A stretch of DNA of 64,000 nt, taken from the sequence record PP496443.1. One strand, 5' to 3'. Made by a program: the position numbers and the translations under genes. Below are positions 18,817 to 25,930 of the stretch, in pieces; position 1 is the stretch's first letter; each line of letters begins with the position of its first letter. The notes below the pieces were generated by a model that did not search any database, was not told the DNA's origin, and worked only from the letters and a program-made list of their open reading frames with translations.

Positions 18817-21696
18817 ATGTATGTAATCCGCCGAGACGGAAGTCGTTCCTTGTTCCAGAGCGAGAAAATCCGGGCTGCTATCGAGCGAGCCTTCTTCGCG
18901 GTCCATGGTCGTGATGCTGATATTCCCACACAGACTGGCCGTGTCACTCAGGCAGTAGAGTCTGGCTTATCCAGTCAAGAATCTGTCCACATCGAAGTCA
19001 TTCAGGAAGGCGTACTCGCTGCGCTGATCGCGGAAGGCCACCCCCGCGTCGAGCATGCCTACCGCGTGTATCGAGACGCCCGCACTGCCCAGCGTGAGCT
19101 GCCCCAGGCTTACACTGACGAGAACGGTACTGCTATCAGCATCCCGGCTCTCACCGACATCCTCGCCCGCGTATCCTTCCGCCTGCCCTACGACGTGACG
19201 GTTCACTTGGACCTGGTGGCCGTGGCGCGCTCGGCGTTCCTGCAGATGTTCAACGGGATCAAGGCAGCTGACGTGCACAACGCACTGATCTTGGCAACCC
19301 GTGCGTTCATCGAGCGTGCCCCGGAGTACAGCAATCTGGCAGCGCAACTGCTGCTGGCCCAGACGGCGCGTGAAGTGTGGGACCTTGACGCCACCACGTA
19401 CCCCACCGCCGATACCTACGCCAAGTGCTACAAGCAGGATACCGTAAGGCTTCTGATTGTCGGCGTGAAAGACGGCATCTACGATCCCAAGCTGACCACT
19501 GGTGGCAGATTAGGATTTGACTTGGACCTCCTCCGGTCAGCAATCAAACCGGAACGTGACCTGCAGTTCGACTACTTGGGTTTGCAGACCCTGTACGACC
19601 GTTACTTCATCCGCCGCGCGGGCGAAGGCGTTCGTATCGAAATGCCACAGACGTTCTTCATGCGGGTGGCCATGGGTCTGGCGATCCTTGAAAGCGATCC
19701 AACGTCAGCGGCGCTTGAGTTCTACGATGTGCTATCCACGTTCGACTACATGGCCTCAACCCCCACCCTGTTCAACGCAGGCACCACGCACAGTCAGATG
19801 TCGAGTTGCTACTTGACTACGGTGCCGGACGACCTGCTGGGCATCTACGGCGCCATCCAAGACAACGCCATGCTGTCCAAGTACGCAGGTGGTCTGGGCA
19901 ACGACTGGACGCCGGTGCGTGCGCTGGGTAGCCTGATCAAGGGCACCAACGGCAGGTCGCAAGGCGTGGTCCCGTTCCTCAAGGTGGTTAACGACACCGC
20001 CGTCGCTGTGAACCAAGGCGGAAAGCGCAAGGGTGCCGTGTGTGCATACCTTGAAACGTGGCACATGGACATCGAAGAGTTCACCGAGCTGCGCAAGAAC
20101 ACAGGTGATGATCGTCGTCGTACCCACGACATGAACACCGCCAACTGGGTTCCTGACCTGTTCATGGATCGCCAGGTGAAGGACATGGATTGGACCTTGT
20201 TCACTCCGTCGGAATGCCCTGACCTCCATGAGCTGTACGGCGAGGCTTTCAAAGCCCGTTACGAGTTCTACGAGGCGGAAGCTGCCGCTGGCCGTATCCA
20301 GACCTTCAAGACCGTGCGCGCCAAGGACCTGTACCGCAAGATCCTGTCCATGATCTTCGAAACCGGCCATCCATGGATCACGTTCAAAGATCCGTGCAAC
20401 ATCCGCAGCCCTCAGAGCCACGTAGGCGTCGTGCATAGCTCCAACCTGTGCACCGAGATCACCCTGAACACGAAGTCCTCCATACCTGAACTCAAGGACG
20501 GTGAGACGGCCGTGTGCAACTTGGGTTCGATCAACCTGCCGCGCCACTTGAAATATGTGGGCGCGGGTGAAGTTGGCGCGGGACTGGACATCGACCACGA
20601 GAAGCTGAAACGCACCGTTACTCTGGCCGTGCGTATGCTGGACAACGTGATCGACATCAACTTCTACCCGACCAAGGAAGCGAAGAACAGCAACATGCGC
20701 CACCGTCCGATCGGTCTGGGTGTCATGGGCTTCCAAGACGTGTTGTACGCCAACAGCGTCGGATATGACAGCCCCCACGCCGAGTTCTGGGCGGGGTACT
20801 TCCAGCGTTCCATTGCTCTGTACGCCATCAACGCATCGGCTGACCTGGCCCAACTGCGCGGCGCGTACGAATCGTTCCAAGGTTCGGACTGGTCGATTGG
20901 TGTTCTTCCAGTGCACACGTTCCAAACCCAGATCGATATCCGTCGGCGTCAGGGCTTCAAGTTTGATGCTGCACAGAAAGCCCAAGATCTGGCTGACACC
21001 ATCGGCAAGACCAAGATCAACGGCAAGACGCTGGCCGATCTGGAAAGCTACTTGGCGAACAAGGTCACTCACGGCATGCGTAACAGCAACGTGATGGCGA
21101 TTGCGCCGACGGCTACCATCTCGAACATCGTCGGCGTGACTCAGAGCATTGAGCCTACGTACGAGCAGGTATTCGTCAAGGACAACCTGAGTGGCAAGTT
21201 CACCGTGATCAACCGCTTCTTGGTTGAGCAGCTGCGTAACTGCGGTCTGTGGGACTCGGACATGCTTGACCAGCTCAAGATGAACAACGGGTCCATTCAG
21301 GGCATCCCTGAAATCCCGGAAGGCATCAAGGACGTGTATCGCACTGCGTTCGAGTATGAGCCTGAGGTGCTGATCAACTGTGCCATCCAGCGTCAGATCC
21401 CAATCGATCAGGCACAGTCGCTCAATCTGTACATGGCGAACCCGTCGGGTAAGAAGCTGGCGAACACGTACGACTACGGCTTCGAGATTGGGTTGAAGAC
21501 CACGTATTACCTCCGCGCCAAGGCTGCGTCGTCCATCGAGAAGTCCACCAGTCGTACCGGCGGCGAGTTGAACAGCGTCAAGAACGCTGCGAAGGTAGAA
21601 GCCCCCGTTGCTGCTCCAATGCCGGAAGCTGAAGGTGCTGCATGCTTCCTGCGTCCAGGTGATCCGGGCTTTGCAGAGTGCGAAAGCTGCCAGTAG
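18817..21696 (+). CDS. nrdA: Ribonucleotide reductase class Ia alpha subunit with ATP-cone
   Basis: N-terminal VIRRDG cone; TPTLFNAG, SSCYL, SSNLCTEI, VCNLGS, APTATIS, LKTTYYLR and C-terminal CESCQ. Confidence 0.97.
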   Translation: MYVIRRDGSRSLFQSEKIRAAIERAFFAVHGRDADIPTQTGRVTQAVESGLSSQESVHIEVIQEGVLAALIAEGHPRVEHAYRVYRDARTAQRELPQAYTDENGTAISIPALTDILARVSFRLPYDVTVHLDLVAVARSAFLQMFNGIKAADVHNALILATRAFIERAPEYSNLAAQLLLAQTAREVWDLDATTYPTADTYAKCYKQDTVRLLIVGVKDGIYDPKLTTGGRLGFDLDLLRSAIKPERDLQFDYLGLQTLYDRYFIRRAGEGVRIEMPQTFFMRVAMGLAILESDPTSAALEFYDVLSTFDYMASTPTLFNAGTTHSQMSSCYLTTVPDDLLGIYGAIQDNAMLSKYAGGLGNDWTPVRALGSLIKGTNGRSQGVVPFLKVVNDTAVAVNQGGKRKGAVCAYLETWHMDIEEFTELRKNTGDDRRRTHDMNTANWVPDLFMDRQVKDMDWTLFTPSECPDLHELYGEAFKARYEFYEAEAAAGRIQTFKTVRAKDLYRKILSMIFETGHPWITFKDPCNIRSPQSHVGVVHSSNLCTEITLNTKSSIPELKDGETAVCNLGSINLPRHLKYVGAGEVGAGLDIDHEKLKRTVTLAVRMLDNVIDINFYPTKEAKNSNMRHRPIGLGVMGFQDVLYANSVGYDSPHAEFWAGYFQRSIALYAINASADLAQLRGAYESFQGSDWSIGVLPVHTFQTQIDIRRRQGFKFDAAQKAQDLADTIGKTKINGKTLADLESYLANKVTHGMRNSNVMAIAPTATISNIVGVTQSIEPTYEQVFVKDNLSGKFTVINRFLVEQLRNCGLWDSDMLDQLKMNNGSIQGIPEIPEGIKDVYRTAFEYEPEVLINCAIQRQIPIDQAQSLNLYMANPSGKKLANTYDYGFEIGLKTTYYLRAKAASSIEKSTSRTGGELNSVKNAAKVEAPVAAPMPEAEGAACFLRPGDPGFAECESCQ

Positions 21697-21721
21697 TCTG
21701 ATCCAGCTGTAATGTAAATGA

Positions 21722-21754
21722 TAGGGCGGGCAGGCAACTGTTTCCGCCCTATTT
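21722..21754 (+). other. Hairpin between nrdA and the nrdB-like gene
   Basis: TAGGGCGG/CCGCCCTA stem, short T run, directly after TGTAAATGA. Confidence 0.5.
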
Positions 21755-21780: not shown

Positions 21781-22566
21781 ATGAGTGCTGTACCTAATCG
21801 TGTGTCCCTAGTGGACAAGCGCATCTTCAACGGAAAGGCTGATGTCAACGCCTTGCTACCGCTTCGGTATCCGTGGGCCTATGACGCCTACGTGAACGCG
21901 AACAAGAACCACTGGCTTCCCGGCGACATCCACCTCGATCTGGATCGAGTCAACCATGAACATCAGTCGTACTGGCCTGCTGTCAGCCGGTTCCTGATCA
22001 GCGTAGCCCAGCGCGCCGAGATCGATCGACAGCACATGCTCTTCGTGTATCGGGCCACCACGGCGCCCGAGGTTCGTCAGCGCTTCCTCCGTATGGGTCA
22101 GGAAGACACCATTGCCATCATGCTGGCGCAAGACATGGGGCTGGCAATGGAAGACTTCATCCCGTCTCCAGAGGTGGTGTTGTACAAGACGGAGAAAGCC
22201 TATCTGGCCGGACTCATGGAACTGATCGAGCGCAAGCTCTTGTCCGTGGCCGAAGGCAAGTACATCCTCGAAGAAGTACCGGGGGTGCACCAGAATATCC
22301 GCAAAGCAGTTGAGAACATCCACCGGGACGTGGACTCTCAGTTGGACTTCCTGTTCACCCTGCTACGCACCTTCCTTGGCGAATGCGAGGTCAGCTCCTA
22401 CCGGGGTTGCAACACGCAAGCGTTCTGGCAGAGCAGCAACCAGTACCACGCCCACCTGAACTCGATTGTTCTGAACATTCTGACGGGGGCGCCGGTTACC
22501 CCCACGCCGTATCAGACGCAGGTGGTCGCAGACAACCAAACCAAAGACACACTGACCTGGGACTGA
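21781..22566 (+). CDS. Degenerate NrdB paralogue lacking metal and radical residues
   Basis: N-terminus DKRIFNGKADVNALLPLRYPWAY..NHWLP is NrdB-like; RMGQEDTIAIML replaces RQAxEEAxHTxxY; no second ExxH. Confidence 0.7.
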   Translation: MSAVPNRVSLVDKRIFNGKADVNALLPLRYPWAYDAYVNANKNHWLPGDIHLDLDRVNHEHQSYWPAVSRFLISVAQRAEIDRQHMLFVYRATTAPEVRQRFLRMGQEDTIAIMLAQDMGLAMEDFIPSPEVVLYKTEKAYLAGLMELIERKLLSVAEGKYILEEVPGVHQNIRKAVENIHRDVDSQLDFLFTLLRTFLGECEVSSYRGCNTQAFWQSSNQYHAHLNSIVLNILTGAPVTPTPYQTQVVADNQTKDTLTWD

Positions 22567-22568
22567 CT

Positions 22569-23543
22569 ATGACCGTTCTTACTCACGTAAACCCGCACGA
22601 ACATGAGTGGGCGTTGGAAAAGACCTTGGCATCAAACGCTAACCATTGGTTGCCCCAAGAGATCGGGCTGTCCACGGATATCCTGCAATGGAAGACCGGG
22701 CAGTTGAGCGACGACGAGATGCGCATGGTCAAGCGTAACCTCGGGTTCTTCTCCACCGCTGACTCGCTGGCCGCGAACAACATCATTCTAGGCACCATAC
22801 GTCACATCAAGAACAGGAACTGTCGCCACTACCTGTTCCGACAAGCGTATGAAGAGGCATTCCACACGGAGTCCTACGCGTATGTGATCGAGAGCCTTGG
22901 CTTGGATCAAGGTGAGATCTTCAACGCCTACAACGAGATAGAGTCGATCCGGGCTAAGGATGAATTCCTTCTGCCGTACATCGAGGTGCTGACTGATCCG
23001 GCGTTCCAAGCGGACACCATCGAGAACGTCCAGATCCTGCTCAAGTCGCTGTTCGCATTCGCGTGCATTATGGAAGGTCTGTTCTTCTACGTCGGCTTCG
23101 TTCAGATGCTATCGCTGGGCCGTCGCAACAAGCTGCCCGGTTCCTCGCAAGAGTTCCAGTACATCCTGCGTGACGAGAGCGGCCACTGCAACTTCGGTAT
23201 CGACCTGATCAACACGATCAAGCGCGAGTACCCAGGTGTGTGGACTACGGAACTCCAGAAGGAGTGCACCGACATGCTGCGCACTGGCGTTGACCTTGAG
23301 CAAGCCTACGCGGTAGACACTCTGCCCAACGGCGTGCTTGGTCTGAACGCTGGCAACACCCGCCAGTACCTGGAGTTCATCGCTGACCGCCGCTGCATTC
23401 AGGTGGGACTGCCGGTGCAGTACAACCAGAACGAGAACCCGTTTCCGTGGATGTCGGAAATGGTTGACTTGAACAATGAAGAGAACTTCTTCGAGAAGAA
23501 GGTCACGGCGTACCAGCAAGCCGCCGGACTGGAGTGGGATTAA
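22569..23543 (+). CDS. nrdB: Ribonucleotide reductase class I beta subunit
   Basis: NHWLPQE, FFSTADS, EEAFHTESY (radical Tyr), MEGLFFY, RDESGH and NFFEKKVTAYQ; start moved to ATG 22569. Confidence 0.93.
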   Translation: MTVLTHVNPHEHEWALEKTLASNANHWLPQEIGLSTDILQWKTGQLSDDEMRMVKRNLGFFSTADSLAANNIILGTIRHIKNRNCRHYLFRQAYEEAFHTESYAYVIESLGLDQGEIFNAYNEIESIRAKDEFLLPYIEVLTDPAFQADTIENVQILLKSLFAFACIMEGLFFYVGFVQMLSLGRRNKLPGSSQEFQYILRDESGHCNFGIDLINTIKREYPGVWTTELQKECTDMLRTGVDLEQAYAVDTLPNGVLGLNAGNTRQYLEFIADRRCIQVGLPVQYNQNENPFPWMSEMVDLNNEENFFEKKVTAYQQAAGLEWD

Positions 23544-23646: not shown

Positions 23647-23659
23647 TACGGTCCGGTAA

Positions 23660-23691
23660 ATAGGGGAGTGAGCAATCGCTTCCCTATTTTT
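23660..23691 (+). terminator. Intrinsic terminator with GCAA loop
   Basis: ATAGGGGAGTGA-GCAA-TCGCTTCCCTAT plus TTTT; overlaps CGGTAAATAG. Confidence 0.75.
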
Positions 23692-24778: not shown

Positions 24779-25930
24779 ATGAACGATGATCTGAAAATCA
24801 CAGAGGTTAACTCTGTGAAGGAATACGATGAGCACGTGGAAGAGCTGCTGCTGACCTTGTTGGGGCTGGGTTCTTCCACTACCCGCAACGACCAAGGCAC
24901 CCGCAAGATCGGCGCCACGTCGATCAGCTTCAACCTGCTGTCGATGTACCCTTCGATCCCGATGACCACGCTACGCCCGATCTCGTGGGCCAGTATCCTC
25001 GGCGAGCTGTTGGGCTTCATCCGTGGCGAGACCAACGTGCAAGCGTTCAAAGACCTCGGCACCAACGTATGGAACGCTAACGCCAAGGAACCCGCATGGA
25101 AGAACGATCTGCTGGCGCCGAACGAAGGCGACCTCGGGCCGATCTACGGCAAGCAGTGGCGCAAGTGGGAAGATATCAAGTTGGCGGATTATGGACGTGA
25201 CCTGTCTCCACTGGGTTACACGCAGGTAGGGTGGATGAATGACGGTAATTGGGACGCCGTAGGTTCTCCTCCTCCCGGTGTCTGGCGCCGCGAAGTAGAC
25301 CAGTTGATGGAAGCCTTGAACCGCATCAAGGCCAACCCCAACGACCGTCGCGCTGTCATCTCGGCGTGGAATCCCGGTGACATGGATTTCATGGCTCTGC
25401 CTCCTTGTCACGTGATGATGCAGCTGACCACGGTGCCTTATGCCCAGCACAAGTACGGCACCTACACAGATGGTGCCAGCGACTTCGAGATCGACTTCAA
25501 CGAGAACTACTCGGAGCAGGTGGTATCGGATACCGTCGAGCCTAATCTCAGTGGAGAGACGGTGCCCCGGTACGCACTCAATCTGGTTGTGACCCAGCGC
25601 AGCCAAGACACCCTGCTCGGTCGGGCGTACAACATCCCGGCGTACGCCACTCTGCTTCGCCTGTTCGCCCATCTGCTGGAAATGGCACCGGGCAACCTGG
25701 AGTTCAACGTCGGCGACCAGCATTTGTACAGCAACCATGAAAAGGCGGCTGACGAGATTACTGACCGCGAAAGTCTGGACAAGGATGAAGAAGGCGAAAA
25801 GCTATTCCAACTCTCTATCGTTGGCGTGGACAAGTTCAAAGATCTGGACACCCTCACCGCCGACAATTTCATTCTGACTAATCAGGTTACGCATGATAAG
25901 TTGGAATCCGACACCAAGATGACTGTGTAA
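24779..25930 (+). CDS. thyA: Thymidylate synthase (ThyA family)
   Basis: ELLGFIRG, LGPIYGKQWR, SAWNPG, LPPCH (catalytic Cys), QRSQD, YN and GDQHLYSNH; two insertions. Confidence 0.93.
   Translation: MNDDLKITEVNSVKEYDEHVEELLLTLLGLGSSTTRNDQGTRKIGATSISFNLLSMYPSIPMTTLRPISWASILGELLGFIRGETNVQAFKDLGTNVWNANAKEPAWKNDLLAPNEGDLGPIYGKQWRKWEDIKLADYGRDLSPLGYTQVGWMNDGNWDAVGSPPPGVWRREVDQLMEALNRIKANPNDRRAVISAWNPGDMDFMALPPCHVMMQLTTVPYAQHKYGTYTDGASDFEIDFNENYSEQVVSDTVEPNLSGETVPRYALNLVVTQRSQDTLLGRAYNIPAYATLLRLFAHLLEMAPGNLEFNVGDQHLYSNHEKAADEITDRESLDKDEEGEKLFQLSIVGVDKFKDLDTLTADNFILTNQVTHDKLESDTKMTV

Follow-up and report, generated by a model that had tools for sequence, protein, structure and literature searches.

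Catalytically inactive partners of the class I ribonucleotide reductase (RNR) small subunit (R2, NrdB) have been described from eukaryotes. Yeast Rnr4 (Y4) is an R2 paralogue without iron ligands; inactive alone, it is required for Rnr2 to fold correctly, and the working form of the small subunit is a ββ' heterodimer (PMC3267527, PMC3824934). The apicomplexan R2_e2, or Plasmodium second small subunit, is likewise a non-canonical R2 beside a canonical one, and its iron-coordinating residues are largely conserved across clades (PMC3824934). In the PMC and bioRxiv literature we found no report of an inactive or ligand-less R2 in phage or bacteria. Here we describe such a protein, which we call β', encoded directly upstream of nrdB in Pseudomonas phage vB_PpuM-Lauda (PP496443.1; genome 201,030 bp; host P. 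putida KT2440/PaW85). The window that we analyzed is a 64,000-nucleotide stretch of this record, and its coordinates are those of the record. A first-pass annotation of the window, made from the sequence alone, had proposed that the gene next to the true nrdB is a tandem NrdB paralogue that is catalytically dead, and homology, fold and ligand loss now bear this out. It knew of no described equivalent; yeast Rnr4 is one (PMC3267527, PMC3824934). Described equivalents are eukaryotic only, and the phage protein is an independently evolved β' pseudo-subunit. We conclude with high confidence that β' is a selected, catalytically dead R2. The locus comprises three genes:

18817..21696, plus strand: nrdA, class I RNR large subunit, 959 amino acids (Pfam ATP-cone, Ribonuc_red_lgN and Ribonuc_red_lgC, 595 bits)
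21781..22566, plus strand: β' (Lauda_00021), a ligand-less R2/NrdB paralogue of 261 amino acids by homology and fold, labeled 'hypothetical protein' in the record
22569..23543, plus strand: nrdB, active-type small subunit of 324 amino acids that carries all of the D/E/H/E/E/H ligands plus the radical tyrosine but no N-terminal arm (Pfam, NCBIfam and ligand table)

The nrdA product carries a single N-terminal ATP-cone and a cysteine pair at its C-terminus. No other NrdA-type gene occurs in the 201-kb genome, and β' and nrdB are its only two R2-type genes. The record annotates 18817-21696 as the RNR large subunit and 22569-23543 as the RNR small subunit; the true start of nrdB is the ATG at 22569, 2 nt past the TGA of β'. 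A 1.9-kb stretch of the window is 100% identical to Lauda, and eight further phages from the same collection match it at 94-96% nucleotide identity. Together these nine form the 'G3' jumbo phages of the CEPEST collection, whose description does not discuss RNR (bioRxiv 10.1101/2024.03.26.586772). Among the cultured phages in INPHARED, the β' gene occurs in these nine P. putida phages only.

The sequence scores of β' fall below curated family thresholds, and its full-length homology to R2 becomes visible by profile methods. PF00268 (Ribonuc_red_sm) matches β' weakly, at 21.6 bits, below the gathering threshold of 33.6 and over residues 24-107 alone. NF005550, the best NCBIfam family for both copies, reaches 61.6 bits against a cut-off of 309, and a BLASTP match to the adjoining NrdB is limited to 29 residues around N-H-W-L-P, a motif that both proteins contain. 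Aligned by hhalign to the family of cognate NrdBs, β' scored 94.5% over residues 15-261, and a profile of five β' sequences retrieved the class Ic R2 structures 6y2n (E 9e-23) and 1syy (E 6e-20) over the arm and helices B-C. An AlphaFold2 (AF2) model built on an alignment of 15 relatives displays the long helices of the R2 bundle, with a predicted local distance difference test score (pLDDT) of 79.5 and a predicted template modeling score of 0.78; residues 1-25 fall below a pLDDT of 50 in this monomer model. In structural comparisons by Foldseek/VIA-align, all matches shown are R2 or R2-like oxidase structures, and Z reaches about 20 over 224-236 residues. The best VIA-align matches are again the class Ic R2s 6y2n and 1syy (Z 19.9-20.0 over 224-228 residues; for 6y2n, Z 20.0 and a root-mean-square deviation of 3.7 Å over 224 residues). 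PHROGs held no meaningful match for β', and an ESM Atlas feature search was uninformative, returning sub-threshold matches (0.81 for 'Gp34', and 0.79 for an NrdB cluster at rank 10).

The nrdB product, for its part, matches PF00268 at 266.8 bits, from profile position 4 to the last of 281, and NF005550 at 504 bits from profile position 64. Because nrdB is complete and β' is homologous to R2 along its whole length, the pair reflects a duplication, as the N-H-W-L-P motif in both genes had suggested at first pass. A split gene was rejected, since the nrdB product alone spans the whole Pfam model. A fusion of β' and β by frameshift or readthrough was rejected as well, because their relative frame varies between loci, where the two genes lie 1, 2 or 4 nt apart or overlap.

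Upon alignment with the cognate NrdBs, four segments of β' proved informative:

21796..21924, plus strand: β' codons 6-48, ancestral N-terminal arm (V-D-K-R-I-F, D-V-N, P-x-R-Y-x-W-A) leading into N-H-W-L-P, recognized by conservation
22048..22134, plus strand: β' codons 90-118, helix C region, Y-R-A-T-T-A-P-E-V-R-Q followed by Q-E-D-T-I-A-I-M-L, from alignments
22324..22341, plus strand: β' codons 182-187, degenerate second R-D-E-x-x-H motif, here R-D-V-D-S-Q with the Asp kept, from alignments
22552..22566, plus strand: β' codons 258-261, retained tail motif L-T-W-D with the TGA stop; L258 and W260 are invariant

The active subunit has its complete set of cofactor residues (D65, E96, H99, Y103, E169, E203 and H206), and this D-E-H-Y-E-E-H series is kept in all cognate betas. 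In β', ligand 1 has changed from Asp to Ala79, and Asp109 occupies the position of ligand 2. Ligand 3 and the radical tyrosine are gone: residues 101-134 contain neither a histidine nor a tyrosine, and Q-E-D-T-I-A-I-M-L stands in place of the E-x-x-H-x-x-x-Y motif. Ligands 5 and 6 have changed from Glu to Val184 and from His to Gln187, and ligand 4 is uncertain in placement, as MAFFT and hhalign differ by a few residues. In sum, four to five of the six ligands and the tyrosine are lost. Trp45 and Asp183, which we take to be the counterparts of E. coli W48 and D237, are both kept. The first-pass annotation had noted the loss of the iron-binding histidine, the radical tyrosine and the second ExxH, and the cognate alignments agree. 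Because ligands 1, 3, 5 and 6 and the tyrosine are replaced, a dinuclear metal site and a tyrosyl radical are excluded in β', as judged from its sequence.

The closest sequences and structures to β' are the class Ic R2s (Chlamydia trachomatis R2c, 1syy; 6y2n) and the NrdBs of the NF005550 subclass. β' shares with them the arm, N-H-W, Y-R-x-x-T-x-P-E-C-R-Q and the L-x-W tail. Unlike β', which is without a metal site, class Ic R2 swaps just the tyrosine (to Phe) and ligand 1 (to Glu) and keeps a working Mn/Fe site. Like yeast Rnr4, β' is a selected R2 paralogue without a functional metal site that is encoded beside an active R2. Unlike Rnr4, it is of independent origin in the bacterial NF005550/PRK07209 lineage, clustering with phage and metagenome sequences in a tree that includes no yeast Rnr4; its core is shortened to 261 amino acids, with the ligand and tyrosine losses given above; and the N-terminal arm, lost from the active partner, is still present in it. 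That the phage pair forms a heterodimer is an analogy with the yeast case. R2_e2 resembles β' as a non-canonical R2 next to a canonical one, and differs in being eukaryotic and in largely conserving its iron-coordinating residues.

The N-terminal arm is the most conserved part of the β' family and holds most of its invariant alignment columns. Among cellular proteins, betaproteobacterial NrdBs come nearest to the active phage NrdB (60-63% identity). In these and in an Acinetobacter NrdB, an arm of the form R-V-x-V-x-D-K-R-I-I-N-G-x-x-D-V-N-Q-L-V-P-F-K-Y-K-W-A-W precedes N-H-W, and Y-R-H-I-T-A-P-E-C-R-Q stands ahead of the first cofactor motif. The arm of β' is identical to the cellular arms at 20-23 of 43 residues, which upholds the earlier remark that the first gene keeps an arm missing from the active copy. 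In all six active phage NrdBs the arm is deleted or unrecognizable and the motif is altered, for example to I-R-H-I-K-N-R-N-C-R-H. By these alignments, the two copies have divided the ancestral features between them: the cofactor resides in β, the arm and its neighboring surface in β', and tails in both. Because the arm and the P-E-C-R-Q region are kept together in β' and lost together in β, this pattern suggests that they may form one functional unit.

The C-terminal tail is the feature that β' and β have in common. L258 and W260 are invariant in 15 of 15 family members, which end in L-x-W-D/E, and the linker preceding this motif is disordered (pLDDT <50) and variable in length and sequence. 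The TGGGAC that encodes W-D lies 5-10 nt before the nrdB ATG. Active NrdB tails read L-E-W-D in Lauda and L-E/T/D-W-D across these phages, and cellular NrdBs of the NF005550 subclass end in G-G-A-L-S-W-D/E. Tyr315 of the active subunit, 10 residues from its end, has no in-register counterpart in β'. Thus, of the earlier statement that the C-terminal Tyr tail is lost, the absence of the tyrosine stands, and the tail itself is retained as L-T-W-D. In class I RNR, binding to the large subunit is determined chiefly by the last residues of the small subunit. Because β' retains such a tail, it probably docks on NrdA through L-x-W-D.

We also noticed that NF005550 cellular NrdBs (L029-L108 and L018; betaproteobacteria, Acinetobacter) begin with M-L-x-W/F-D/E-D-D/E, followed by a low-complexity linker and then the arm. 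This N-terminal motif is nearly a copy of the C-terminal G-G-A-L-S-W-D/E of the same proteins and may constitute a second or self-competing docking motif; it occurs in neither phage copy. L018 (CAKLQH020000007.1, 'Acinetobacter phage MD-2021a') encodes rstAB, LysR and TetR regulators and a 427-amino-acid cellular-type nrdB adjoining nrdA, and seems to be part of a bacterial chromosome and not a phage.

β' is under purifying selection and is maintained rather than decaying. Its 786-nt open reading frame is intact in all nine phages, with neither a frameshift nor a stop. The mean ratio of nonsynonymous to synonymous substitution rates (dN/dS) among the nine is 0.10 for β' versus 0.035 for nrdB. 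Between Lauda and Peetri, β' shows 39 synonymous differences on 180 sites and 17 nonsynonymous differences on 602 (Fisher p 1e-14). In the full set of nine, variation is purely synonymous at 47 codons, and 16 residues vary; the tail, the arm, the helix C motif and the R-D-x-x-x-Q helix contain none of these 16.

More distant relatives place the gene in the same setting. A word-based search found three relatives farther off, at 60%, 31% and 30% identity; an exhaustive profile search of 1.84 billion sequences left eight cluster representatives alone at E <1e-30; and a pattern scan of IMG/VR using the β' family alignment found no relative. The full nrdA-β'-nrdB order is present in the loci L010, L015 and L017, and L011, L014, L016 and the P0008 contig show the same order over the part that each contig reaches. 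At every locus with DNA or gene calls, the relative lies directly upstream of a complete nrdB; its stop precedes the start of nrdB by 1-4 nt, or the two genes overlap by 8 nt. The contigs encode phage-type DNA polymerase A and topoisomerase. In a maximum-likelihood tree, ten β' sequences form one clade and six cognate NrdBs another (support 99 each); the β' clade holds phage and metagenome sequences only. The tree comes from a rapid search and has long branches, so that its deep placement of β' among R2 groups is provisional. Because the internal order of the two clades largely matches (Lauda with L014/P0003, and P0005 with P0007), the data fit a single ancient tandem duplication that would have been followed by joint inheritance of β' and nrdB. 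In L015, a metagenomic contig (JGI 3300045375), a group I intron (L015:7928-8137; RF00028, 67.1 bits, E 6e-17) lies near the nrdB 3' end after N-F-F-E-T-R, and the last nrdB exon encodes a Tyr-containing tail ending in L-A-W-D.

Ligand-poor R2 homologues extend beyond this family. Among 73 fully aligned top profile matches, 54 keep at most three of the six ligands, a count that is biased by the degenerate query and by hmmalign to a small model and is to be taken as a lead rather than a census. These are all unannotated metagenome proteins, and 45 of the 54 end in a hydrophobic-x-W/F tail. Many ligand-poor R2s (P0018-P0147; L023:7001-8356; L025:7001-8071) carry an Asp at the E. coli D237 position and an L-x-W tail, and often have Gln as ligand 6. 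Some ligand-less matches are 400-750 amino acids long. Tandem R2-R2 fusions, which would have favored heterodimers, were rejected for these proteins, as each has a single R2 domain behind a long, unassigned N-terminal extension. P0165, which represents a 96-member cluster, and P0020, which keeps the tyrosine and has no histidine, lie near dihydrofolate reductase, thymidylate synthase (ThyA) and thymidylate kinase (Tmk) genes on contigs of 270-300 kb. On the 250-kb contig L020 (L020:855-3334), a ligand-poor R2 of 339 amino acids (P0013) stands directly upstream of a complete NrdB of 480 amino acids. Because of this tandem, a pair of a dead and a live R2 exists outside the Lauda clade.

How might a dead R2 serve the phage enzyme? 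The first-pass annotation had offered three candidate roles: an asymmetric heterodimer, an assembly chaperone or a dominant-negative inhibitor of host RNR. We propose that β' joins the phage RNR without taking part in catalysis, most probably through a ββ' heterodimer as in yeast Rnr2/Rnr4, a reading by analogy that we hold to be about equally balanced between right and wrong. β' would stem from an old tandem duplication of the phage nrdB, after which it would have lost the metal site and the radical tyrosine and become unable to generate a radical; selection would then retain it for a structural role within the phage class I RNR. Made together with active β from genes 2 nt apart, it would dock on the large subunit through L-x-W-D, as do the small subunits of its subclass. 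The resulting assembly would be an asymmetric ββ' heterodimer bound to alpha2. It would have a single cofactor site and a pair of docking tails, and β' would supply the ancestral arm and the adjoining Y-R-x-x-T-A-P-E-C-R-Q surface that active β lacks. The conserved 1-4 nt junction between β' and nrdB fits equimolar co-assembly. The parts of this proposal differ in strength: that β' acts through its tail on NrdA we hold with moderate confidence, and that it pairs with β rather than with itself we consider about even.

Several observations weigh against the heterodimer. The arm and the presumed docking motif lie in the same chain, as a β' homodimer with a trans-packed arm would likewise predict. 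Around P0165 and P0020, the flanking 7 kb on each side contain neither an nrdA nor an nrdB gene, and because these two R2s lie alone, dead R2s may act without a cognate β. The heterodimer model is drawn by analogy from an unrelated eukaryotic lineage. Finally, β' evolves about four times faster than β (tree path from Lauda to P0004, 3.31 versus 0.79). Two of these points, the arm and motif in one chain and the R2s that lie alone, favor the main competing explanation, in which β' works alone, as a homodimer or monomer, and serves as a tail-mimicking ligand of the phage or host NrdA that tunes, blocks or redirects RNR, for example by competing with the host beta or by altering dATP-inhibited oligomers. 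The L-x-W-D tail is of the same type as in NF005550 cellular NrdBs, so that cross-binding to a host alpha is conceivable; the co-retention of arm and P-E-C-R-Q in one chain fits a self-sufficient homodimer, and tail-bearing ligand-less R2s stand without a neighboring nrdB in other big phage-like contigs. Yet the tight coupling to nrdB, conserved in every core-clade member, suggests equimolar co-assembly, and competing against the phage's own beta would be costly. We regard a β' that works alone as unlikely, though it is the strongest of the alternatives.

The remaining explanations appear weaker. β' could be a chaperone that folds β or assembles its cofactor (metal or radical loading) outside the working holoenzyme. 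Such a role has been proposed for yeast Rnr4 (PMC3824934, PMC3267527), and the gene junction implies co-translation with β, but a pure chaperone needs no invariant alpha-docking tail; we consider this improbable. Slightly less probable still is that β' has been recruited away from RNR, for instance to scaffold a nucleotide-synthesis or replication complex with the R2 fold as a frame. The fast evolution, the core shortened to 261 amino acids and the disappearance of nearly all catalytic features would suit such a role, whereas in all relatives the gene sits at a fixed place inside the RNR operon, and conservation is highest in the RNR-specific tail and arm. Could β' instead be a new, metal-free radical-generating subunit of the class Ie kind? 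The class Ie R2 of Mesoplasma florum (NrdF, 6gp2) is among the structural matches (Z 17.6), and class Ie R2 is likewise missing part of the canonical ligand set, several metal ligands being absent. Class Ie R2 keeps its tyrosine as a dihydroxyphenylalanine (DOPA) radical, keeps both histidines, needs NrdI and is the sole small subunit of its operon. β', unlike it, has neither Tyr nor His at residues 101-134 and no in-register tail tyrosine; no PF07972 (NrdI) match was found in the Lauda genome; and a complete, conventional nrdB adjoins the gene. Because the site tyrosine and NrdI are missing and a normal nrdB lies next door, we judge a class Ie-like function very improbable. Least probable of all is that β' is decaying, as a pseudogene or as what remains of a displaced nrdB; the sub-threshold Pfam score (21.6 against 33.6 bits) and the 'hypothetical' label might have suggested this. 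The first-pass annotation had named dN/dS across relatives as a check and disruption in relatives as the mark of decay. With a dN/dS of 0.10, nine of nine genes intact, and intact homologues in the same position down to about 30% identity, decay is refuted.

The short region between nrdA and β' holds two further elements:

21714..21719, plus strand: GTAAAT hexamer, contained in a (C)GGTAAAT(G/A)A-like motif that recurs between genes, from sequence
21721..21752, plus strand: GC-rich hairpin with a 9-bp stem and a 14-nt loop, followed by ATTTAAT, from sequence and fold

The first-pass annotation had credited β' with its own GTAAAT motif and leader hairpin. Both are present, but the hexamer, with 18 occurrences in the window versus 13.4 expected, was rejected as an enriched signal, and the hairpin looks terminator-like. 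The two elements are identical in the nine phages. In Peetri, the only phage with an HNH endonuclease gene inserted between nrdA and β' (L002:3306-4007), they remain attached to an intact β' downstream of the insertion. In L014, the 60%-identity relative, the stem differs on both sides and the loop G-C-A-G-G-n-A-A-C-T-G-T-T is kept; a GC hairpin occurs at the same place in all other related loci (L010, L011, L015 and L016), with a T-run often following. A consensus terminator scan did not call the hairpin at 21721-21752. Because an equivalent GC hairpin follows nrdA at every related locus, often with a T-run, it reads as a putative terminator-like or RNA-stabilizing element between nrdA and the β'/β pair. 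The extended GGTAAAT(G/A)A occurs on the plus strand before several genes (11926, 14069, 23656, 33373, 37944, 41994, 49602 and 58933). The (C)GGTAAAT(G/A)A motif often has a short GC hairpin a few bases after it; at 23658-23689 the motif overlaps the sole terminator-like site called. GGTAAAT(G/A)A may be a candidate phage promoter element, or a promoter/terminator module. A thymidylate synthase gene lies 3' of nrdB at 24779-25930.

At the level of annotation, our reading of β' corrects the 'hypothetical protein' label in nine genomes. A bolder proposal would be that an RNR small subunit has been split by duplication into obligate complementary halves (the cofactor in β, the arm and P-E-C-R-Q surface in β', and tails in both), as an independently evolved viral ββ' with one radical site per dimer. 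In this proposal β' would stand, from a cultured phage, for a far larger and as yet undescribed population of R2s in large phages that have alpha-binding tails and neither metal nor radical. We offer this tentatively and think it somewhat more apt to fail than to hold.

Class I RNR displays half-site reactivity, and the need for a symmetric beta2 and the job of the conserved small-subunit N-terminal arm are open questions in the field. To our knowledge, the yeast ββ' has been the only natural one open to study so far, and it is entangled in eukaryotic regulation. The host, P. putida KT2440/PaW85, is a laboratory strain, and the three-gene phage operon (alpha, β', β) would be a minimal bacterial-type ββ' system. 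It would address whether one cofactor site per dimer suffices, and whether a dead subunit aids cofactor assembly or spares iron. It would also address the purpose of the arm and the P-E-C-R-Q surface, which evolution has here separated from the cofactor site, and whether tail-bearing dead R2s are a general phage device for handling host or phage RNR.

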